Positions 32,919-62,321 of a DNA stretch of 64,000 nt are shown here, one piece after another. The notes under the pieces are model-generated. The model made no database searches. It worked only from the letters and a program-made list of their open reading frames with translations, and was not told the DNA's origin. The stretch lies in contig CM097883.1 in assembly GCA_044892505.1 (NCBI GenBank), positions 226,114,001-226,178,000 on the forward strand. Direction: 5' to 3'. Within the stretch, counting starts at the first letter, position 1. Every line of letters starts with the position of its first letter. This DNA is from Schmidtea nova (Eukaryota). Both the position numbers and the translations under genes were made by a program.

Positions 32919-35900
32919 TGTTATATATTTAATAATCTAGTTTGCCCAACAAGAAACTCTGTTTGCAACAAATGCCAGAAGAAAGGTCACTGGAGTCCGG
33001 TATGTTTAGCTAAAAAGATAGCGTCTATCTCTACTGAAGAAACAAACATGGACGTTGACGGACAGATTCAGAGTTGCTCTATTTCTAGATTAGCAACAAT
33101 CAATGCCCAAAATTCTTTAGTTGAGGCTTTTCTCGATGGAAACTCAGTTCGAGCATTAATTGATAAGGGATCAGATTTGTCCTTTGTGTCAGAAGAATTC
33201 CTTAATAGTAAGAATCTAACCTTTAATCACAAAGAAGTAAAACAGGTTCTCCTTGCGAAAAAATCGATATCCTCAACTTTAGGTACCTACTATGGAAAGT
33301 TAATGTTGGCAAACAAGGTCTACGAGGCACATTTCCAAGTCTCCAAATCACTGGTCACTAAAGTGATAATTGGAATGGACATCCTAAAAAGACACTCGAG
33401 ACTTAATCTAGAACTTGGTGGCGATAGACATCCGATCACACTATCTCTAGCTCTCAAGACAATGACATGTGACACGTATCCGCTCTTGCCAGGAGTTGAC
33501 ATAAGTAAAATCAAACCAATCGCTATTCCATCACGACGGTCCTCACAAAATTCAGAGTTTATCAGCCAAGAAATATCGAGACTCCTCTCCGACAGAATCA
33601 TTCAAGAAAGCCAAAGTCCTTGGCGAGCACAGTGCTTCGCCATCAACCAGAACAGCAAACAACGGCTCGTAATATATTACTCAAATACAATCAATCGATA
33701 CACTAATCTTGACTCATACCCAAAGCCTAGAATTGACGATCTGCTCTTTAAAATAGGAAAGAACACAATTTTCAGTAAGGTAGACCTCAAGTCAGCATAT
33801 CATCAGGTCCAAATTCAACCATCAGACTATCAACTAACTGCTTTCGAAGCACAGGGTAAATTTTATGAATTTACCAAACTACCTTTCGGTTGCACCAACG
33901 CAGTCCCAATTTTTCAGAGAATCATCGACAAATTCATCCAAGAGCACAATCTTCAGTCAACGTTTGCTTATCTCGACGACATAATAATTGGTGGTAAAAA
34001 TAAAGAAGAGCACGATCAAAACCTTAAAGAATTTCTAAAGGCCTCTAAATTAAAAAATCTACAAATAAACGAAAGCAAAAGTAAATTTTCTACAACGTCT
34101 ATATCATTTCTAGGACACGTAATTGAAAACCAATCAATAAGGCTAGATCCGGACCGTTTCAAGGCTCTCATGGACCTTCCAATTCCAGCGTCTACAAAAG
34201 AAATGGATCGTTTAATAGGTTTTTTTGCATATTACGCAAAATGGATCCCACGATGCTCAGAATACACGAGAATACTAACTGATTCTCGTAAAGAACTCAC
34301 GTCAAGCAACACACTGCCAAATGAATACATCGAAACAATACATTTACTGAAGACCAAATTACAAACTGCTTCACTACATTCCCCAACTCAAGATCAACCT
34401 TTAGATATTGAAACCGATGCATCCGACCATGCATTGGGCGGAGTATTGAGTCAGAACAGCCGACCGATTGCATTCTTTTCTCGTTTACTCTCAAAGTCAG
34501 AAAGGAATCACTCCATCATTGAAAAAGAGGCCGCGGCAATCGTTGAATGTACCCAAAAATGGCGTAGCCTCTTACATTCAGTACCTTTCTTTAATATTCT
34601 TACAGATCAGAAGTCAGTTTCGTTAATATTCAATCGGCAAAAATTATCCAAAACTAAGAATGAAAAGATCGCACGATGGAGAATTGAATTATCAGATCTG
34701 AGATTCAACATAAAATGCAAACCAGGTCCCGACAACATACTAGCTGACGCATTATCTACATGTAGTTCAATAATTAGTTCTAACTCTTTAAAATTACTTC
34801 ATGGAAGTTTATGTCATCCCGGTATCACTCGTATGTATCATTACTGCCGAGCGAAGAATCTACCATACTCCATCCAAGACATGAAAAACGTTATTGGAAA
34901 CTGTGAAACATGCAAACAGATAAAACCAAGATACTTCAAACCTCCAAGTAGAAGCCTAATCTTATCAATGAAACCCTGAGATAGAATTTCAATCGATTTT
35001 GTGGGACCTCTACAAAGCACAACATCTAATCGTTTCTTGCTCGTCGTTGTCGACAAATATTCCAGGTGCCCTTTTGCCTTTCCTTGTGCTAACGTCGATT
35101 CTGACACCGTAATAAAACACATGTTCAGTTTATTTACCTTGTTTGGTTCACCTTCGTCCGTACATAGCGACAGAGGAGCACAATTCGAAAGCAGACAATT
35201 CAATGACTTTTTAATTAAACACGGAGTGGCGAAAACACGTACAACGCCTTATCATCCTTATCATTGGTCAATGCGAAAGAATTAACGGAATTCTATTGAA
35301 AACGATAAACTGAGCCCTAAAGGAAAGCAATATGAGCAAGGAGCATTGGGAAAAAGTATTGGACGTATCCCTTTCATCAATGAGATCACTGTTGTGCGTC
35401 TCTACTAATTCGACACCTCACGATCGAATGTTTAAATCTGATCGAGCGTCCGTAATTGGATGTGATTTACCAGAATTTCTACGAAATACTGATCAAAACA
35501 TCCTACTAAAACGCCACATTCGCTATAAAAATGATCCACTTGTCGATGAGGTCAAACTGATCGAGACAATATCGCCGTACTATGCAAGAGTACAACACAG
35601 AGATGGAAGGACAGACACAGTATCGACGAGTCACCTTGCACCATGTTCAAATAGCTCAGCTGATAGGACCGGTACAGAGCTTGAAAGTGGGAAAGACAAC
35701 CAAGTATTCCGAGACTACATTTGAAGACAGTTTGTCGTCAACAGAACCAGCAGGAAGCGAATCGACTACCCGATCTGGAAGACAAGTAAAAGTACCGTCA
35801 CGATACTTAACCTAGAGGGGAAGAATGTTATATATTTAATAATGATTTGTTTTAATATTCTATATTAAAACATTCATCATTATTCAAATTGAATAAAAAC

Positions 35901-35935
35901 TTTTAGTATCACACTAGTTGTTTTTTATCAGTTCA
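32919..35935 (+). mobile_element. Gypsy LTR retrotransposon with 5' LTR/gag deletion
   Basis: 5-bp TSD ATTCG (32914-32918, 35936-35940); 110-bp 3' LTR TG...CA (35826-35935) after PPT AGAGGGGAAGAA; the 5' LTR is reduced to its first 18 nt and joined to the gag zinc knuckle (CNKCQKKGHWSPVC). Confidence 0.88.
33048..35724 (+). pseudogene. pol: Gypsy pol (protease, RT, RNase H, integrase), disrupted
   Basis: LIDKGS (DTG decayed), YLDD, TDASD, HGSLCHPG...CETC, then an in-frame stop at 34977-34979, integrase core DFVGP/HSDRG, and a frameshift near 35270. Confidence 0.88.
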
Positions 35936-36143
35936 ATTCGTTTAATAGTATCAATACCTTTATAAATTTCAGCTCATAATGAAAGGACGGCTGTTACAGA
36001 TTATTATTTATTTTATAATAGAATTTTGAATCTGCAATAAATTTGGAATTGAATAAAGTGGAGATCAATGGATACGTAATCATTAATTATATTTGATCAC
36101 CAATTCAATATAGAATCAGTGACTAAATTCTACAAAAACTTAC

Positions 36144-36462
36144 ATTGTTGTTTGAAGAATATTTTGAATTTCTAATCTGAGTTTCTCTACAGTTCTTTCG
36201 TCTTTCAAATTCACTAGAAACTTTGGTGTATCTATTTCTTGCTTAGGTTTTATTTCTAGTTTACATTCCGGCCCAGGACTTTTGTCTTCAATTCGCCTTT
36301 TCTTTAATGACCCCGTTGCAATTGAATCCTCCAATAATATTGACGATCGTTTTTTACCGATAACTGGAGAATGTATGTGTTCAGGTTTTGGATATTCTTC
36401 TGGTGTTTTTTCTTTTTTCTCCGTTAAATCTTTTACTGGACATTCACCCTCACTTTCTTCTT
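36144..36462 (-). CDS. Divergent RNGTT-like gene, exon 8 (linker and start of guanylyltransferase)
   Basis: cattatag|AA acceptor; ...TVEKLRLEIQNILQTT AT|gtaagt phase-2 donor joins exon 9 G to give ATG and EIQNILQTTMYGFVG, matching KVRDLMSVSKYEFVG of the normal copy. Confidence 0.8.
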
Positions 36463-36560
36463 CTATAATGAAATTTATTATAAAACTGTAGTTCAATAAA
36501 TTATTATTTAGCAGATTATGAAAAATTAGTATTTTCTCAAAAATAAATATATTTTTGCTA

Positions 36561-37215
36561 NNNNNNNNNNNNNNNNNNNNNNNNNNNNNNNNNNNNNNNN
36601 NNNNNNNNNNNNNNNNNNNNNNNNNNNNNNNNNNNNNNNNNNNNNNNNNNNNNNNNNNNNNNNNNNNNNNNNNNNNNNNNNNNNNNNNNNNNNNNNNNNN
36701 NNNNNNNNNNNNNNNNNNNNNNNNNNNNNNNNNNNNNNNNNNNNNNNNNNNNNNNNNNNNNNNNNNNNNNNNNNNNNNNNNNNNNNNNNNNNNNNNNNNN
36801 NNNNNNNNNNNNNNNNNNNNNNNNNNNNNNNNNNNNNNNNNNNNNNNNNNNNNNNNNNNNNNNNNNNNNNNNNNNNNNNNNNNNNNNNNNNNNNNNNNNN
36901 NNNNNNNNNNNNNNNNNNNNNNNNNNNNNNNNNNNNNNNNNNNNNNNNNNNNNNNNNNNNNNNNNNNNNNNNNNNNNNNNNNNNNNNNNNNNNNNNNNNN
37001 NNNNNNNNNNNNNNNNNNNNNNNNNNNNNNNNNNNNNNNNNNNNNNNNNNNNNNNNNNNNNNNNNNNNNNNNNNNNNNNNNNNNNNNNNNNNNNNNNNNN
37101 NNNNNNNNNNNNNNNNNNNNNNNNNNNNNNNNNNNNNNNNNNNNNNNNNNNNNNNNNNNNNNNNNNNNNNNNNNNNNNNNNNNNNNNNNNNNNNNNNNNN
37201 NNNNNNNNNNNNNNN
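36561..37215. other. Assembly gap (N run) hiding the end of exon 7
   Basis: Run of n. Confidence 1.
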
Positions 37216-38009
37216 AAACATAATATTCATGGGATCATAACTATAATCCAACACTGGTACTTCTTCCTCTTCTATAGTAGCTTCTCGTTTATCTCTTGTT
37301 TTATCTTCACTTTGATCTCTGGATCTATCTTCCTTTCTTTCGTATGATCTATCTTCTCCTTTTTCTCTTGATGCATCTTCTCTTTTATCGTATGATCTAT
37401 CTTCTCGTTTATCTCTAGATCTATCATCTCTTCTATCACACGATCTATCTTCTCGTATATCTTTTGATCTATCTTCTCTTCTATCACGTGATCTATCTTC
37501 TCGTTTATCTCTTGATCTTTCTTCCCTTCTATCGTCTCGTCTATCTCTTGACCTATCTTCCTTTCTATCTACTCGTCTATCTTCTCGTCTATCTTCTCGT
37601 CTATCTTCTCGTCTATCTTCTCGTCTATCTTCTCGTCTATCTTCTCGTCTATCTTCTCGCCTGTCTTCTCGTCTATCTCTTGATCTTTCTTCTCTTCTAT
37701 CATCTCGTCTATCTCTTGGTCTATCTTCCTTTCTATCTTCTCGTTTATCTTCTCGTATATCTTCTCGCCTATCTCTAGATCTATCTTCTCTTCTATCATC
37801 TTGTCTATCTCTTGGTCTATCTTCCTTTCTATCTTCTCGTTTATCTTCTCGTCTATCTTCTCGTCTATCTCTAGATCTATCTTCTCTTCTACCCTCTGGT
37901 CTATCTTTTGGTTTATCTTCCTTTCTATCTTCTCGTATATCTCTTGATCTATCGAATTGTCTATCTTTACTGATGCATTCTTTTTGTTTTGTTGGTTTTA
38001 TTGATTGGG
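37216..38009 (-). CDS. Divergent RNGTT-like gene, exon 7: RE/RD/RS mixed-charge repeat linker
   Basis: taatttag|CC acceptor in phase with exon 6; 794 nt with no stop in the REDR frame (checked codon by codon); built from a 12-bp CGAGAAGATAGA unit; runs into the gap. Confidence 0.8.
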
Positions 38010-38059
38010 CTAAATTAAAGAATAAACATAAAAAATCATTCCATTCAGTAAATATCCAC

Positions 38060-38211
38060 TTTCAGCAGGAAGTTTAATTTCCCATTCTGGAGGAGATGGA
38101 TAATGGATGGGCAAATTCGGTTGATGTATTTTCAACAAATATTTTAAAAATTTTGGATTATAAATTCCGGGAGGACGAGATTTAGCAAACATTTCCAATG
38201 CTTCATGCAGT
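38060..38211 (-). CDS. Divergent RNGTT-like gene, exon 6 (end of triphosphatase domain)
   Basis: LHEALEMFAKSRPPGIYNPKFLKYLL...PSPPEW matches RNGTT FAQARPPGIYKGDYLKEL...PPPLLPDW; flanked by 44-bp and 50-bp GT-AG introns. Confidence 0.9.
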
Positions 38212-38255
38212 CTGATTGAATCAGTTACATAAATTTCATATAGATTAGAACTTAC

Positions 38256-38331
38256 TGCATCCCACGTTGCGTTACAAGGTAATTGACTATCATGAATCCG
38301 GTCAGGTTGTAACCATGAGTGCAATGAACCG
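38256..38331 (-). CDS. Divergent RNGTT-like gene, exon 5 (triphosphatase P-loop, Arg->Leu)
   Basis: tttcag|CG GTT CAT TGC ACT CAT GGT TAC AAC CTG ACC GGA = (A)VHCTHGYNLTGFMIVNYLV; CA|gtaagt donor. Confidence 0.92.
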
Positions 38332-38406
38332 CTGAAATAAAATATGAAGGGGTTTCTTTATATGTTTAATACAAATTTTAAAGGATAAGCAATGTTACAA
38401 ACTTAC

Positions 38407-38495
38407 CTATTTTCCCCTCTTTATCCAACTCTATATTCTTATTAACTATTTTGATAAAAGCTGTGATTTGTTTAGAAGTCGGTAAAGCGTCCGCT
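38407..38495 (-). CDS. Divergent RNGTT-like gene, exon 4
   Basis: ADALPTSKQITAFIKIVNKNIELDKEGKI matches [20 protein letters not shown]...ELIG; atctag| acceptor, G|gtaagt donor. Confidence 0.88.
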
Positions 38496-39479
38496 CTAGA
38501 TATTATTTATATATTTTTATTATATTGATTATTATTATTATTACATTTTTTGATAAATAAAATGAAAACTAGTCATAAAAATATGAATTTGTTATTGCAT
38601 GACTTGTAACATTTTTTTTCAGAAAATTTTCCAAAGTTTACATACACAAAAATATACTGACACTTAATTATTTATACCGACCAAAATATTATTTTATACT
38701 GATATTTTATTTAATAAAATACCGACCAATTATTAAAAAAAATACTGACCAAATAAATAAACCCCAATGATTATCATTATTTTATCCAAATATATGATAT
38801 AGCAGCAGGATAAAGGTCTTCATAGCTTTACAAGCATTTAGAAAAATATAACAATAAAAGTGTTCTGATAGTTTCTAAATAACTTTTTAGTCAATTTTAA
38901 GGAAATAGTGAAAACTGGTGGCCATAAAAAATAATTTATTAAATATTTTCAATTGCTGGGGGTCCTTTGATAGTTTTAAGCACTGTTACTTAAATTGGTG
39001 GTCCACGCACAGGTGTCACATCAAGAAAAGAAAGATTCTAGCTTAAGGCATACATTTATTTTTATCGAAACGTTAACTGCCACATTTTTATTTTTGATAT
39101 TTTTGGTGCCTTAGGGCTGTATATAAATTTATATGTTAAATATTTTTACAAGTTGAGCAACTTTGAAACAAAAAAAAATAATGTTGAAAACTAGAAGCTA
39201 TGTGTGATTAACGAATACGCATTTTATTTAATATAATCCTATTGCAAGTAAAAATAAATATTCAAATCTCCATTTAGGGATTGCCGTAGCAAACGGGCTA
39301 ACTATACTAACCATATAGTTGTACTCCACTTCTTACATATTTTAAGTAAATTTTAATATTGTCATAAATGTTGTTTAAATTAGTTAATTAAAAAAGTTAG
39401 ATTAGATATGAGGTCAGACTTGTCCTTTGTATCAAAATAATTTTTAACAATTCATAACTTAAAGTTTTATTTTTCAGGA

Positions 39480-40110
39480 GTCAATTTGATATTAAAAGCA
39501 GACAATTCAAAATCTATAACTTTAGGATCTTATAATGGAACAATCAGCTTACAAAATACCATTTACAGTTGCACACTCCAAGCATTCAAAAACCTTTTTA
39601 AACCACTGTTTATCGGAAAAGACTTACTCAAGCGACATTCTAAAATTCATCTAGATCGTGGAGGCAAAGAACACCCAATCACTCTCACTTGAACTAAAAC
39701 AATGAAATGCAATATCTATTCACTGACATCAGTGATAGATCATACCAAAATCAAACCAAATGCGATGCCCTCTCGTCACTCTTTAACCAACAATGACTAT
39801 ATAAATCATGAAATCAACAACTTTTTAAAAAATATATTATACATTAAAGTCAAAGTCCTTGGCAAGCCCAATGCGTCTTGATAAATAGGAACTTTAAACA
39901 ACAACTCGTGATAGCCTATTCAAACAGTCAACAGATTTGCAAAGTTGGACTCTTCGCATGTCACGAATAGATGATCATCTCAATAAAGCATCAAGACATT
40001 CAATCTTCAGTAAAGTAGATCTCAAATCCGCTTATCATCAGATCCCAACATGTCCCACGGAGTATTGTCTTACAGATTTCGAAGCTTGTTGTAAATCTTT
40101 TTAATTAAAA
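39480..40110 (+). pseudogene. Gypsy protease-RT relic (same family as 32919-35935)
   Basis: IGKDLLKRHSKIHLDRGGKEHPITL, SPWQAQC, FSKVDLKSAYHQIP; multiple disruptions. Confidence 0.65.
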
Positions 40111-42392: not shown

Positions 42393-42490
42393 CCAGGAAC
42401 TGTTATTTTAATTTGAAGAACATCTATCATATCATTTGACTTGTAGAATGGTTCCGAATCAATTAAGTCTATCATCAGTACTATTCGGTA
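42393..42490 (-). CDS. Divergent RNGTT-like gene, exon 3
   Basis: YRIVLMIDLIDSEPFYKSNDMIDVLQIKITVP-GG| matches [21 protein letters not shown]...IKLQCKG; 45-bp intron upstream; phase-2 donor fits exon 4. Confidence 0.85.
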
Positions 42491-54313: not shown

Positions 54314-57300
54314 TTATTTGCTTATATGGTATCGCTTAAGCCATTCGATATTTCTAATCAAGATTTTATCATTTGGCATTTTTATTTTATAACTCCTATC
54401 ATGGTTCTTTTCTATTACTTCACATGGACCATCAAACCTATCGTCGTCTTTCGTTCTTACGTCCTTTTTAACTAAAACTAGATCCCCAATCGAGAACTCA
54501 CGGTTTATTCTTGTCGAGTTGTTATATATCAATTTGTCTTCATTTAAGCGTAATTTTGAATCTATAATCTCTCTTCTTTCGTTTTGTTCTTTCATATAAT
54601 CACTCACTTCCATTTCGCCAAAAACTGTCGAAGGCCATTCTCTGTAAATTTTCTTTCCATAAACTACTTCTGCTGGACTGAATCCAATTGTGCTTTGAAT
54701 TGTTGAATTTAACATGAACTCTACTTCTGGTAATATATCGGCCCAATTACTGTTATGCATTTTATCTTTTATTGATATTTGAATAGCATCTCTAATAGTT
54801 CTAAATTGTCTTTCAATCACGCCGTTTGCCGAATGATGATATGGGCTACTATATGTTATCTCCATTTTATGTGTTCCTGTAAGTGTTTTTATTACGTTAG
54901 ATTCAAACGCTTTTCCTTTATCAAAATATATCAATTTTGGTGCTCCAAATCTTAAAATCCAATTATCTTTAATTACCTTTGCAGTGGTATTTTCATCTTG
55001 TCTTGCTATAGCATTCAAAGAAATATATCGACTAAATTGATCAATTATTGCAAGAATGTATTTCTTTCCATTAACTGTCGTTTTGAATGGTCCACAAATG
55101 TCTACAAATACAACTTCAAATAATTCTGGTATTCTATGTTTCATTATCGTTTCTTTCGTGCGTGTGGTAACAGATTTTCTTTTTTGACATTGTTCACAAC
55201 TTTGAACAACATTCTTAATATTTTCCATTTTGTTTTCCATATCAAACTTCTGTGATATATAGTCATTTACCTTCCTTACTCCAGCATGACAAAGTGTACG
55301 ATGCGTATATTCTATAAAATTTTTTACGTTGTCATTTGGTATCCATATTTTGTCTTTCATTGTTTTTATAACCTCATCTTCAACTTTTAAGCCTAACTTT
55401 TCATCGTCGTTAATCTGTTTCTTTATAATTAATATATCTTTTGAATCCTTTTGCCATGTTGAACCATTGTCTCCTAGCATGAGAGCTAATATTCTTGTCT
55501 TTAATCTCCCTTTCTTTGGTTCTTCGTGAATGGTCTGACATTGTACGCAAGTCACGCAGTCTTTCCTTGACAATGCATCAGCATTACTATGTAGGTCACC
55601 CTTTCTGTATTCCAATTTCATATCTAAACTACTTAAATGATTTATCCATGTTTGGAATTGTGGTGTTATTGGTTTTTTAGTTTTTATCATAAAAGTTATC
55701 GCTTTGTGGTCTGTTCTAATCCGAAATCGTTTACCATATAAATAGTGCTTAAAATGCAAGGTAAAATAGTAAATCGCAAGTAGTTCTTTTCTAGTAATAC
55801 AATAACCTAATTCGTGGGTGTTCATCGCATGAGAGCCATAAGCTATCACTCTTTCATTTCCACTAGCATCTAACTGTGATAATACCGCTCCTATCCTATC
55901 AAAACTGGCATCGGTATCTAAAATGAATTCTTTCGAAAAATCAGGAAATGCCAAAATCGGGGATAACATTAATTTTTCTTTAAGGTTTTGAAAAGCTATT
56001 TCACATTCGTCTGTCCAAATCAATTTCGTTTGGTTGCTTCCGCAAAGTTTTTCTAGGTCTTTTGAATATTTCGAATAATTTTCTATGAATCGTCTATAAT
56101 AATTAGTTAAACCAAGGAAGCTCCTTAACTTCTTCAAACATTTCGGTCTCTCGTATTGTTTAATTGCCTCCAATTTGCTATCATCTGTTCTTATACCATT
56201 TTTGTTAATAATGTGTCCTAAAAATTTGATTTCTTCTTTCATGAAGTTGCACTTATTCATACTCAATTTTAATCCAGCTTCTTTTATTCGATTTAGAACA
56301 TTTCTAACTCTCCTAACGTGCTCTTCTTTTGTAGGAGAAAAAATTAATATATCATCTAGATATACAACAGCTTCTTTCCAGTTTAAGGGTCCTAGTACCC
56401 TGTTCATTAATTTCTGAAATGTTGCAGGTGCTGCTGCGATTCCAAAGGGCATACGATTAAAGCAATATTGTTCGTTCTTTGTTGAGAATGCGGTTTTTAT
56501 CTTTGAAAGTTCATCTAATTCTACTTGGTAAAAAGCATTACCTAAATCTAAAGTAGTAAAATAAATTGATCCATTTAAAATATCCATCATTTCTTCGGTG
56601 CTTGGTATTGGAAAAATCGGTCTTTCGGTTACTAAATTTAATGCCCGAAAATCTAAACAGATGCGGATATCATCTTTACCTTTCTTTTTTACACATACAA
56701 GAGGAGAGTTCCATGCAGATTCACATTTCTCGATAATTCCATACTTTTCCATCTCTTTTATATTTTGATCTATTTGCTCTATCAAATGTATTGGTTGGCG
56801 ACGTGGATTTATTACCACCGGTGGTCCTTCAGTATTAATGTTATGTTTAATTAACGTTGTTAAACCAATATCCCATTTATGTTTCATAAATATTGGATCG
56901 AATTCTTTCAAAATATTTTGAATTTCATGATCTAACGTTAGAACATTATTTTGATTAGCATTTTCTTCAATGTAAGCAATCTCATCTTTATTTTTATTTT
57001 TCCGTAAAAATATCTCAAATTCATTTAAAAAGTTGATTCCTCCTATCATTTTTGGTATTACTCCATTTGTTACGTAAAAATCTATTATTTTAGAAGAATT
57101 CCCTAGATTTACTTTTATTATTGCTTTTCCAATAACCTTAATCGGGCTCCCATTTGCACATTTCACTTCTATATCACTTTTGTCTATTTTAATTTCTCTA
57201 ATGTTTTTTATTATTTCATATTCAATCACACTTATCTTTGCACCAGTATCTAACATACACCTGATTATATTATTATTAATTTCTACTTCCACACTGGGCC

Positions 57301-57532
57301 TACCACCCATATAATTATACGTTATATTTGACCTATTGAAGTCTTTAATAACACAAATTTCAGTACCTATTCTATTAGTTTGTTTATTGTCCTTTAGACG
57401 GGATACTTTATTTATATTGTTATAAAAATTATTATTATTATTATTCAAATTATCTGCAATTACATTACATTCATTAAAATCAATATCATTCACACAATCA
57501 CAATCATTAAATTTCATACATACATTGCTCAA
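54314..57532 (-). CDS. pol: Gypsy Pol polyprotein (PR-RT-RNase H-IN), uninterrupted
   Basis: LDTGA, YLDD, DTDAS...ELL...TDH, HRTLCH...CEQC, VDICGP / DKG / IERQFR; the frame is open from ~57598, consistent with expression by -1 frameshift. Confidence 0.95.
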   Translation of the reverse strand: MSNVCMKFNDCDCVNDIDFNECNVIADNLNNNNNNFYNNINKVSRLKDNKQTNRIGTEICVIKDFNRSNITYNYMGGRPSVEVEINNNIIRCMLDTGAKISVIEYEIIKNIREIKIDKSDIEVKCANGSPIKVIGKAIIKVNLGNSSKIIDFYVTNGVIPKMIGGINFLNEFEIFLRKNKNKDEIAYIEENANQNNVLTLDHEIQNILKEFDPIFMKHKWDIGLTTLIKHNINTEGPPVVINPRRQPIHLIEQIDQNIKEMEKYGIIEKCESAWNSPLVCVKKKGKDDIRICLDFRALNLVTERPIFPIPSTEEMMDILNGSIYFTTLDLGNAFYQVELDELSKIKTAFSTKNEQYCFNRMPFGIAAAPATFQKLMNRVLGPLNWKEAVVYLDDILIFSPTKEEHVRRVRNVLNRIKEAGLKLSMNKCNFMKEEIKFLGHIINKNGIRTDDSKLEAIKQYERPKCLKKLRSFLGLTNYYRRFIENYSKYSKDLEKLCGSNQTKLIWTDECEIAFQNLKEKLMLSPILAFPDFSKEFILDTDASFDRIGAVLSQLDASGNERVIAYGSHAMNTHELGYCITRKELLAIYYFTLHFKHYLYGKRFRIRTDHKAITFMIKTKKPITPQFQTWINHLSSLDMKLEYRKGDLHSNADALSRKDCVTCVQCQTIHEEPKKGRLKTRILALMLGDNGSTWQKDSKDILIIKKQINDDEKLGLKVEDEVIKTMKDKIWIPNDNVKNFIEYTHRTLCHAGVRKVNDYISQKFDMENKMENIKNVVQSCEQCQKRKSVTTRTKETIMKHRIPELFEVVFVDICGPFKTTVNGKKYILAIIDQFSRYISLNAIARQDENTTAKVIKDNWILRFGAPKLIYFDKGKAFESNVIKTLTGTHKMEITYSSPYHHSANGVIERQFRTIRDAIQISIKDKMHNSNWADILPEVEFMLNSTIQSTIGFSPAEVVYGKKIYREWPSTVFGEMEVSDYMKEQNERREIIDSKLRLNEDKLIYNNSTRINREFSIGDLVLVKKDVRTKDDDRFDGPCEVIEKNHDRSYKIKMPNDKILIRNIEWLKRYHISK

Positions 57533-57546
57533 AATATTACTTACAT

Positions 57547-58602
57547 TTAATTTATTGCTCCAACCACCTCTCCTTGTGATGGAGCATATCCGTTTGGGTC
57601 ATCCTCTTTTATTGATCGTTCGTAGTCCTCTCCGATTACCGCAACGTGTCGATTTTTCTGGAATCGGTTCTCTGTTGACACATCATAGCATTGGTACTTG
57701 AAATGGCCTCTCTTGTGGCAATGACTGCATTGTACATTCGGACATTCGGATCGTATATGTCCTTCTTCTCTACATGCCCAACACTTCCTGTGTCTTGCAT
57801 CTGTTCTTGAATTTCTGTAGTTATCTCTATTTTGGTAATAATAATTGTTGTCGCTTCTTTGTTGTCGGTTATTGAATGTTCTATCATTGTTGAATAGGGG
57901 TTTATATTCTTGTTTTCTAAATTTATCTTGATCTGGCTGATGCCACCTTTGTTGAAATTCGGATTCTTGCCTTGTACCGTCTCTGTATTTCATTTTTGAA
58001 TCGAAACGATTCCCATTATTTCGTTGCCATGATTGACCAGATCTTATATTGGCTACATTTGCATATGTGTTCTTCTTTTGTATTACGGCTACACTTTCTG
58101 CTTCGATTTCTTTCTTGACTTCATCGTTTCTCGTTATTCTTACTTTGATTTCTTCGAATGTAGACAAACCTTGCATCTTTAAATCTTTCTTTAATTCTTG
58201 ATCGTCTAATGCATTTTGAATCAGGAAAATTTTCAAATCTTCTTCTTGAAGTTTGTGACGTAAAATATTCTTTGCTAATCTTTCAACTTTTCTAAAGAAT
58301 TCGGCTGTTGTATCTTCTCCTCGGCGATAAGATAACGCCTTATTTAGGTCGTTTCCTAAATTACTCGGACTTGTAAACGCTGATTGCATTCTCGTTTTAT
58401 AATTTTCTTCGTGTTCTGTTTCCTCATATTTTCTTGTTGCTTCTATTGATAAAAAAGCTTTTACAAAAATACCTCTGTGTTCTTCGGCCGTCTGTGTCAA
58501 TTCAAAAAATCTTTCTGTTTCTTCAATAAATTTGTCGATATCATTTCCTATCTCAAATATTTCTGGAGGTCTGATAAATTGTAACATTGGCGTGGTCGCC
58601 AT
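57547..58602 (-). CDS. gag: Gypsy Gag with two CCHC knuckles
   Basis: MATTPMLQF...CWACREEGHIRSEC and CSHCHKRGHFKYQC; the first internal ATG overlaps the LTR/PBS junction. Confidence 0.9.
   Translation of the reverse strand: MATTPMLQFIRPPEIFEIGNDIDKFIEETERFFELTQTAEEHRGIFVKAFLSIEATRKYEETEHEENYKTRMQSAFTSPSNLGNDLNKALSYRRGEDTTAEFFRKVERLAKNILRHKLQEEDLKIFLIQNALDDQELKKDLKMQGLSTFEEIKVRITRNDEVKKEIEAESVAVIQKKNTYANVANIRSGQSWQRNNGNRFDSKMKYRDGTRQESEFQQRWHQPDQDKFRKQEYKPLFNNDRTFNNRQQRSDNNYYYQNRDNYRNSRTDARHRKCWACREEGHIRSECPNVQCSHCHKRGHFKYQCYDVSTENRFQKNRHVAVIGEDYERSIKEDDPNGYAPSQGEVVGAIN
57556..57598 (-). promoter_or_regulatory. -1 programmed ribosomal frameshift signal
   Basis: Slippery heptamer C CCA AAC in the gag frame (57598-57592), 5-nt spacer, then hairpin TGCTCCA-TCAC-loop-GTGG-T-TGGAGCA; the -1 frame is the pol frame and opens exactly here. 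Confidence 0.75.
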
Positions 58603-60173
58603 ATTAGGTTGATTATTAATTTTTTTATACATTAATTGAAAACACGCTTTCGTTCAAAAATATATATTATTAAAACAAATATTTTTCTTTTGTAATTATC
58701 TCGGAGAATATATATATATATATATTAATATAAATAATACTTTGAGCAATTTCAACATTCATACACAACATATACATACTGTTACACTCATACTGATTTT
58801 TATAATATATAATTAATTTATCAATTTCATCTCACAAAAGAGAAACGTGGCCTTTATTGTGGATAATTGTGCAGTTCATCCTGATGTACAGGGACTTACG
58901 GTAAGCATCATTTTATAAATTCTTACATTTTATACATTCTTACATATAGGCCATAAAACTAATTTTCCTTCTTCCCAATACGACGAGCAAAACTCAGCCA
59001 ATGGATCAAGGCGTTATTCAAAACTTGAAAATGCACTACCGCTCTCGATTACTCTCTCTTCTTCTCACAGATCTTGAAGATGGCAAAGAATTTCGAGTAA
59101 ACCTTTTGGAAGCTTTGCACACAACGAGATATACTTGGAATTCTGTAAAGCAGATTACAATTACAAATTGCTTTAGGCACTGCGAATTCAAAATTTCAGA
59201 TGACATGCCCTTAATCGCTGAAGAGAACATTGAAGAACTGATCAGGAAGAGCAGTACCAGGTAGGCTGAATAAATAATAGAAATTCTATATTCCAAATGT
59301 GTACAGGAACATATGGGACCGACTTCAACAACTGGGGCTCGTCAAAAGCAATGACACATTGGCCAGTTACATCGCAGTCGATAATGATGTAGCCATCTCT
59401 GGCATATTAACGGAAGAAGAAATAGTAGCAGAGGTCGTACACAAGAAGAAAGGAGCTAATGTCGTCGATGAGAGTGATTGTGAAGACGTTGATGATAAAC
59501 TGTCTATCCCATCATCCAAAGCAGCGCGTGAAGCTTGTATGACCCTCCGTACTTTTTGCTCTCTTGTTCTGATGCTCACGCCTCTCTAGAAGAATTAACC
59601 AATATTGAGAATTTTGTAATGAATGTGCAAGTTGATCGACAGCGTCAACTGACGATACCATAAATGTTTAAGTAATAAATTTTATATAAGAGAGCCTTTG
59701 AATATCACTGCTAATATGAATATTAAATCGTAATCGGATAATTCGAAGTAAAATTTTGGTACCCAGCATTTCGAATTAACGAGGTTTTACTGTATAAAAA
59801 TTGTTGAGTGTTAGATCAAAAAGTTGTACATTTTATTTTTGGTTTCAGGTAAATATTGTAATTGTAATTTTGGTAATTGAATAAGTTATTAACCAGTCCA
59901 AATTTGGTTATTTATATAAGATCAAGTTGAGATTCGGTTCTAAAATTCACCAATAATTATTATTTCCTTCTAAAGTCTGTTGTTTTTACCTCCCAAACTG
60001 TAAAATTGAAACAAAGTATAATATTGCTTTACAACCAGACTTCTAATGTGATGCGATTGAAAGATTGAGGTAAAATGTACAAATCTGTGTGCAAAATAAT
60101 GTAAAGACAAAATAATTAATCAAAATATTAATATAATTTTTTGAGGAAAACAGATTTTAGTGGATAGTAGTAG

Positions 60174-60925: not shown

Positions 60926-60998
60926 CTGAGGGAAAGTAAACAAAGGAAAATTTTGGTTTTAAATGGCAGATTTAAAAAAAAAATAATAAATAATTTAC

Positions 60999-61914
60999 TC
61001 GGCGCCTTTTTCATATTCACATTTCAGTTGGAAATCGATTGAATTCAATTCAGGAGGTTTCCATTTCAAAATATACGGACAGGTTCCGGTTTGATAGAAA
61101 TCTTCCGGTCCACAAGGTTGGAATATCAATCCATCCATTTCATGGCACAATTGCTTCCGAAATTTCCCGCTCCAGATCTCACGGGTCTTTTCGATTGGCC
61201 AGAAATCCTTTATCCGAATCCCAAATGATTCGTGTTTGCGCATCTCCGGTGTCACGAATTTGCTTCTGGTGTCGATTAAGCATTTTTTGATGGTGTTAAA
61301 CCGTTTATTGAAGACCTCGTTCCCGACATATTCACCATCGATTGTCATAATGTCGTAGATTAAAAATCGCGGAAATTTCTGGCCTTGATATGTGTCGATA
61401 ACCATCTCACCGTCCACGAGAGTATTTATATAATGTTCGTCTTCGTTTTTCGGGAAATTTATATTCTCGACTTTATAAACGCAATTGTCTCGATCGAACA
61501 TATAGACGAGATCTTTATCGGCTATCAGCATTAAATATCGAGTTCCATCGGCTTTCCAGCTGACCATATATTTTCTTTCAGTTAAAAACTTCAAATTCTG
61601 AGTTGTCATTGACACCGGTTGACTGCCGACGAATTCATATTTCGATACTGACATCAGATCGCGTACTTTCACTTGAACCTCTTCAATCACTGCAGTATCC
61701 ATGACTACCGAAACCTTGCTGACACCTTCCATAAACATTGCTTTTTTCGGAGCAACAAAAGGTTTCCTTGGTTTTCGTTTATGATTTTGTACTTTCAATT
61801 TAACATTTTCAGAACTATTTGTGCTTCCGGAATTATCGGAATCTGATTCACTGTTACTATCCAATTTATCATTTTGATCAGGAATGTACGACTCGTCCTC
61901 ACCGTCACAATCAT
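60999..61914 (-). CDS. RNGTT: mRNA capping enzyme, canonical copy: linker + guanylyltransferase exon
   Basis: ttattag|AT acceptor; FVGSQPVSM, motif I SWKADGTRY (Lys at 61553-61555), FDRDN, LVDGEMV, LIYDIM, EMDGLIFQP, LKWKPPELNSIDF all intact. Confidence 0.95.
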
Positions 61915-62321
61915 CTAATAATGCGCCATAAATAGATATGAAAGGACTTTTGGAAAAAAACATTGCCAAAAAAATAATTACACCAATGATTGTATGTCCA
62001 TCACAAAACGGTAATCCTCAAAGATTAGTTTTGGTAATAAATTTATATAAATTAATGGAAAGGATAATTTTTTAGATAATTTATTATCGGAGTCGAGTTG
62101 CATTCAAAATTCCCAAAGTTGAAAATAGTTTCTGTCAAATTTATTCTTAGACCCTTTATCGTGGAACCTGAGACAACTCTTTTAAATAGGAGAAATGCAT
62201 AGAGAAATGATTTGCAACGGAAAAGCTAATCCAACAACCAATGATAGACACAGGTTACCACCACGTGACGACAAATAAGGTTCGAAAATAAAAGTTAATA
62301 AGAAACAGGTACCAACTAGAA

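Follow-up and report, generated by a model that had tools for sequence, protein, structure and literature searches.

The locus and its capping-enzyme genes

The analysed window, a stretch of 64,000 nucleotides, carries on its minus strand two tandem copies of the bifunctional mRNA-capping enzyme, one canonical and the other a paralogue in which an exon built from a 12-nt tandem repeat lies between the two capping domains (Table 1). Searches with tblastx and tblastn against the canonical copy and the retrieved homologues placed the capping-enzyme exons of the paralogue collinearly from about 51299 down to 3305, with both domains matched in canonical order. The phosphatase loop, H-C-x-x-G-x-x-R in active enzymes, reads H-C-T-H-G-Y-N-L in the paralogue, its arginine being replaced by leucine, and motif I, W-K-x-D-G-T-R-Y with the nucleophilic lysine of K-x-D-G, has become R-T-N-G. 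From what is known of cysteine phosphatases and covalent nucleotidyltransferases, these changes of the loop arginine and of motif I should abolish catalysis. By its sequence, the host gene is a tandem paralogue of the bifunctional mRNA-capping enzyme which has lost key residues of both active sites, and the earlier note on this DNA was right to call it a dead enzyme.

The frame of the paralogue stays open, and its splice sites canonical, across nine exons or more, with about 37% identity to the parent copy. It shares the two-domain order of the canonical metazoan enzyme (RNGTT/Mce1), to which the other tandem copy of the window belongs, and its interdomain linker sits at about the same intron position; the two are 37% identical in the guanylyltransferase exon and 72% identical near the phosphatase loop. 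The linker of the canonical copy is short, as the earlier note had described it: 60 residues, acidic and serine-rich, with a fraction of charged residues of 0.38. A comparable linker exon has been kept by the paralogue and the mixed-charge exon comes in addition to it, so that the paralogue linker reaches ~370 residues as against ~60. A PDB search with the upstream exon returned only weak capping-enzyme matches along with spurious matches to designed repeats.

Table 1. Features of the paralogue locus, with the canonical tandem copy for comparison (window coordinates).
Feature	Position	Strand	Basis or remark
Canonical tandem copy (comparison): linker and guanylyltransferase exon, intact K-A-D-G	60998..61969	minus	Homology
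Exon before the phosphatase-loop exon	38407..38495	minus	RNA-joined to exon ending 42393 over 3.9-kb intron
Exon with phosphatase loop H-C-T-H-G-Y-N-L-T-G (catalytic-loop Arg to Leu)	38256..38331	minus	RNA joints and homology
Exon, end of triphosphatase-like domain (..FAKSRPPGIY..PPEWEIKLPAE)	38060..38211	minus	RNA joints and homology
Intron, 50 nt, GT..AG	38010..38059	minus	Absent from run X3 RNA contig record 20
Mixed-charge exon, visible part	37216..38009	minus	264 codons, phase 1 at start; ~4 nt more inside assembly gap
Array of 12-nt units, 57 units, consensus GAAGATAGACGA = E-D-R-R	37285..37968	minus	Codon-by-codon reading; 228 residues
Core of the array, seven identical units	37573..37656	minus	Unit comparison; short-read contigs break there (4/4 runs)
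Assembly gap (N), with last letters of mixed-charge exon, its donor and most of next intron	36561..37215		
Linker exon, acidic then basic, K-K-R-R type motifs	36144..36462	minus	RNA-joined upstream to mixed-charge exon, downstream to 12199
First guanylyltransferase-like exon, motif I W-R-T-N-G-K-R-Y	11962..12199	minus	RNA joint and homology
Next guanylyltransferase-like exon	3305..3544	minus	Homology only; 3' boundary approximate

Expression and splicing of the mixed-charge exon

Contigs of four public sequencing runs (X1 to X4), all from one study and from the same organism, were aligned to positions 35900-39900. Those of X1, X2 and X4 ran collinear with the genome, introns included, in the manner of DNA. 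Run X3, whose record states no kind, was taken as RNA by its behaviour, since it left 38580-39900 uncovered and its contigs skipped GT..AG segments of the minus strand. One X3 contig (record 20) joins 37842-38009, 38060-38211, 38256-38331 and 38407-38496 with removal of introns of 50, 44 and 75 nt, and its loose end maps uniquely to position 42394. In another, of 1395 nt (record 17), 37216-37601 is followed by three letters and then by 36463-36141, after which the contig continues into sequence with a unique map position at 12196. Given the usual ambiguity of one to three letters at the joints, the splice sites are all canonical: the mixed-charge exon has its acceptor at 38009 (..TTTAATTTAG/CC, the slash marking the joint) and the donor upstream of it lies at 38060 (AAA/GTGGAT), and the linker exon has its acceptor at 36462 (..CATTATAG/AA) and its donor at 36144 (AAT/GTAAGT). 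The exons joined from 38495 to 36144 form a single frame with no stop, and this open frame carries on through 12199-11962 and, by homology, 3544-3305.

The frame that the earlier note had derived from the upstream donor (A/CC) is exactly the one of the spliced RNA contig, and the X3 joints on both sides, together with the uninterrupted joined frame, bear out its proposal of in-frame splicing of the array, as an exon, between the two capping halves. The danger of an in-frame stop in the assembly gap before the donor, which that note had raised, does not arise: the contig exits the exon three to four letters into the gap and the frame is kept. RNA of X3 is present in every bin of the array. Assembly of the X3 contigs stops at the seven identical units, which is why none of them covers the whole mixed-charge exon. 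A joint that skips the exon (38060 direct to 36462) was found in none of the X3 contigs, which drop rare variants; such a direct splice would stay in frame because the exon, of ~798 nt and 266 codons, is symmetric, with phase 1 at both ends. It can be stated with high confidence that the mixed-charge exon is real, expressed and in frame.

Over 36141-38496 the X3 contigs are deepest, at 48.5, in the linker exon and the 3' part of the array, drop to about 14 and reach 6.8 in the 5' part of the array and the upstream exons; this could come from a 3' bias, from an internal start or from an effect of the repeat on assembly. Introns of the paralogue are strongly bimodal in length, three consecutive ones of 44, 50 and 75 nt (38212-38255, 38010-38059 and 38332-38406) standing beside others of 3.9, 8.4 and 23.9 kb with retroelements. 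Inside the 23.9-kb intron lies an intact-looking Gypsy-type gag/pol frame of 643 residues (33048-35800, plus strand), and intact-looking frames of the same type, of 1072 and 361 residues, lie between the two capping-enzyme copies (54314-58632, minus strand). A mariner-like transposase frame of 256 residues (1916-2683, minus strand) is found beside an N gap near the expected last exons of the paralogue. The X1 DNA contigs reach a depth in the thousands at 38446-38850 and 39116-39250, compared with about 58 for single-copy sequence, indicating a high-copy dispersed repeat inside the 3.9-kb intron.

Structure of the array and constraint on its reading frame

Tandem Repeats Finder reported one array at 37281-37953, with periods of 24 and 96 and 74-81% matches. 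When read codon by codon on the minus strand, from 37968 to 37285, the register x-D-R-x is unbroken through all 57 four-codon units. The first position of the unit is Glu, Arg, Asp or Lys in 52/57 units, the second is Asp and the third Arg or Lys in 52/57 each, and the fourth is Arg, Ser or Lys in 49/57. Units 8-15 and 16-23 form a duplicated higher-order block of 96 nt. Among the 228 residues there are 85 R, 56 D, 36 E, 17 K and 15 S, and at the RNA level the exon is 80% purine with 38 GAAGA words. The length of about 225 codons given in the earlier note was close, the array itself having 228 codons and the exon 264 visible codons, or about 266 overall. No second copy of the array pattern occurs elsewhere within the 64,000-nt window, a Pfam scan of the array with its neighbouring exons gave no family, and a PDB sequence search with the array gave no match at E <= 0.01. 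A possible origin of the exon tail (..T-I-E-E-E-E..) as a duplicate of the acceptor region of the linker exon was rejected, the local alignment being of 13 nt only with a shuffle P of 0.07.

The same note had remarked that the array looks like satellite DNA and that only its R-E-D-R frame is free of stops over 794 nt. Comparison of the three minus-strand frames across 37216-38009 confirms that the R-E-D-R frame alone is stop-free (264 visible codons), and the plus-strand frames inside the array have 9, 1 and 3 stops. Because a 12-nt unit keeps the frame automatically, substitutions were tested instead of frame length. The array deviates from an ideal array at 138 of its 684 positions, and the observed number and spectrum of substitutions were placed at random on the array in simulations. 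For the R-E-D-R frame 7.5 stops were expected over the whole array where none is observed (P<0.001), and 5.3 where none is observed when only the 35 distinct units were considered (P=0.004). The four further frames whose consensus is also stop-free contain 1, 9, 1 and 3 stops, which is about the simulated expectation or above. The deficit of stops is therefore confined to the R-E-D-R frame, which implies a constraint specific to the proposed coding frame.

Assignment to the arginine-enriched mixed-charge domains

Of the array residues 102 are positive and 92 negative (+10 over 228), for a fraction of charged residues of 0.85 and a net charge per residue of +0.04. Its positive charge is arginine rather than lysine (R/(R+K) of 0.83, 85 R against 17 K), same-sign runs are of two residues at most, and there are 20 R-R dipeptides along with 13 R-S and 10 S-R dipeptides. 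The published definition of a mixed-charge domain asks that, within 60 residues, charged ones make up a fraction of at least 0.7 and positive and negative ones stand in a ratio of 1 +/- 0.3 (10.1101/771592). By this definition 192 of the 205 sixty-residue windows pass, over residues 1-252 of the exon, and the charge pattern is also of the well-mixed, non-blocky kind (PMC9324279). By these published measures of sequence it is an arginine-enriched mixed-charge domain. The earlier note had also likened it to RS domains and to substrates of SR kinases, a reading that is not supported, the S+R fraction reaching 0.53 at most when the published cut-off is 0.6 or more in a 60-residue window, so that no window passes.

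The localisation rules for such domains derive from human cells and synthetic repeats. Greig et al. (10.1101/771592) reported that the entry of pure R-D repeats, 60-120 residues long, into speckles depends on their length and on arginine, and Miyagi et al. (PMC9324279) that alternating charge patterns lead to speckles and blocks of 8-16 like charges to the nucleolus. Long GA-rich exons encoding domains of this type are constitutive in human cells and are bound by TRA2 and SR proteins (PMC12629991).

Relatives of the paralogue and of its exon

By the mixed-charge definition of 10.1101/771592, no such window occurs in any of the 210 capping-enzyme homologues retrieved. A degenerate motif I was observed in 14 of the 210, among them bdelloid rotifer (Adineta) proteins, and some of these are dead at both sites; P0066 and P0096 have a substituted phosphatase loop besides motif I. 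Since paralogues of other animals, in particular bdelloid rotifers, also carry substituted motifs, dead copies of the capping enzyme seem to have arisen more than once. The degenerate paralogues of other animals (Adineta P0066, P0024 and P0055; P0096) resemble the one studied here in the substitution of motif I and/or the phosphatase loop and in the keeping of fold-level sequence. None of them has a mixed-charge window, and in a quick tree they form a clade of their own. In the same tree the paralogue stands on a very long branch, away from the rotifer clade and in a seven-row set with the canonical enzymes of its own lineage (SH-aLRT 95). This position, unsure as the placement of a long branch is, fits the tandem arrangement and an independent origin.

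Scored on the exon alone, a word search with the stop-free frame of 511 codons returned nine low-complexity matches and no capping-domain or same-species protein; the matches, including Rho factors with R-D inserts and a fungal FHA protein, are all unrelated. An exhaustive representative search with the dead guanylyltransferase exon gave 94 matches of at most 51% identity. No close orthologue was found among them, as every strongest match inspected (by E-value, 33-47% identity) is a canonical K-A-D-G enzyme. The nearest relatives of the canonical copy are UniParc entries at 82% and 55-57% identity. The literature search yielded nothing relevant on either inactive RNGTT paralogues or capping enzymes that carry an R-D repeat. 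Other genomes, too, have dead capping-enzyme paralogues; among all the sequences retrieved, this one alone has a mixed-charge exon.

Proposed role of the domain and alternative explanations

A transcribed, in-frame exon lengthens the interdomain linker of the paralogue by an arginine-rich mixed-charge domain of 228 residues. Such a domain is predicted to be disordered and multivalent, and contacts between its arginines and acidic residues would most likely recruit the protein to nuclear condensates of speckle type, where RNA and other domains of this kind are concentrated. Both dead folds could then serve as binding modules for a partner, for example an RNA 5' end or the tail of the polymerase, and the purine-rich RNA of the exon, with its GAAGA words, is probably a dense splicing enhancer securing the inclusion of so long an exon. 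Taken as a whole, a coding exon that places a condensate-targeting domain on a dead scaffold appears to us the best explanation, and a reasonably probable one. For the speckle or condensate role of the domain considered by itself, condensate targeting is the best-supported mechanism by analogy with the domains studied in human cells, and we would put its chance at slightly short of even. Any link between cap recognition and splicing, as the earlier note suggested it, would rest on the same analogy. A bolder proposal, in which the double-dead paralogue would be a reader and not a writer whose folds recognise either the 5' end of RNA or the polymerase tail phosphorylated at Ser5 and whose mixed-charge exon tethers these targets to speckle-like condensates, must be regarded as distinctly unlikely.

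The main rival to condensate targeting is that the exon is neutral, a microsatellite-like array exonised or recently expanded in a tolerant disordered linker and translated without function, in a paralogue that may itself be drifting. The seven identical units and the 96-nt duplicated block suggest recent slippage or duplication, a 12-nt unit would preserve the frame without selection, neither the word search nor the exhaustive search found an orthologue with the insert, and the paralogue branch is very long. Such a passenger would not, however, be expected to have stops depleted in its coding frame only, nor to hold Asp at the second position in nearly all units with replacements mostly among R, K, S, D and E, and the paralogue that carries it retains its open frame, its splice sites and its resemblance to the parent; we regard this explanation as unlikely, although it deserves to be taken seriously. 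That the array would be a non-coding intronic satellite, open only by virtue of its unit length, was suggested by its tandem 12-nt structure devoid of Pfam or PDB match and by the direct splice from 38060 to 36462, which is also in frame. This is contradicted by the spliced RNA contigs linking the array to both neighbouring exons and by the RNA present in every bin, and the satellite explanation can be given next to no credence.

As for the destination of a condensate-targeting domain, a role in the nucleolus, or as a plain nuclear import or RNA-binding tract, instead of speckles is improbable enough to carry little weight. The net charge is slightly positive, R-R dipeptides are frequent at 20, and additional basic residues move mixed-charge domains toward the nucleolus; the nucleolar shift has nevertheless been reported for blocks of 8-16 like charges, far from the runs of two and the near-neutral balance seen here. 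It is very improbable that the exon acts mainly through its RNA, as a GA-rich regulated cassette or nuclear-retention element that sets how much of the paralogue is made, the peptide being of secondary importance. The symmetry of the exon, whose skipping keeps the frame, its purine and GAAGA content and the speckle retention of mRNAs mediated by long GA-rich exons (PMC12629991) agree with such a function, but the skipping joint was not seen in the RNA contigs and the depletion of stops reflects a constraint on translation.

Significance and comparison with known mixed-charge proteins

The locus offers a natural case of a tandem DNA repeat turned into a long, expressed and frame-constrained exon for a condensate-type domain, and the enzyme from which the host pseudoenzyme descends belongs to the core of RNA processing. 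If the targeting to speckles holds true, the protein would serve as a natural test of whether a mixed-charge domain is enough to send a duplicated enzyme scaffold to a new site in the nucleus, and would raise the question of what a capping-enzyme fold does after losing capping. Should the paralogue also be a reader, recognition of 5' ends would be coupled to splicing or RNA storage, and a module of pseudoenzyme plus condensate domain has not been described for the capping machinery. The exon also calls for caution in annotation, as ORF-based or repeat-masked pipelines would overlook it.

Among known systems, the closest likeness is to the mixed-charge domains of speckle proteins such as U1-70K and CPSF6 and to the synthetic R-D repeats, with which the array shares a charged fraction of at least 0.7, near-balance of charges, arginine as the basic residue and fine interspersion. 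At 228 residues it is far longer than the 60-120 residues for which speckle entry of pure R-D repeats has been reported. It differs from the domains of U1-70K and CPSF6 type by its four-residue E-D-R-R/S unit, which comes from a young 12-nt tandem array, and by a host scaffold that is derived from an enzyme and has no RNA-recognition motif. Like the RS domains of SR proteins the array is arginine-rich, of low complexity and provided with some R-S and S-R dipeptides, but its negative charge comes from Asp and Glu and not from phosphoserine, and its S+R fraction stays below 0.6. Alternating arginine and acidic residues are also a property of nuclear RNA-processing or pausing factors, as in the R-D repeat of NELF-E and the R-E-D repeats of protein Red (IK), to which the array is likened here for this alternation only, their scaffolds being different.
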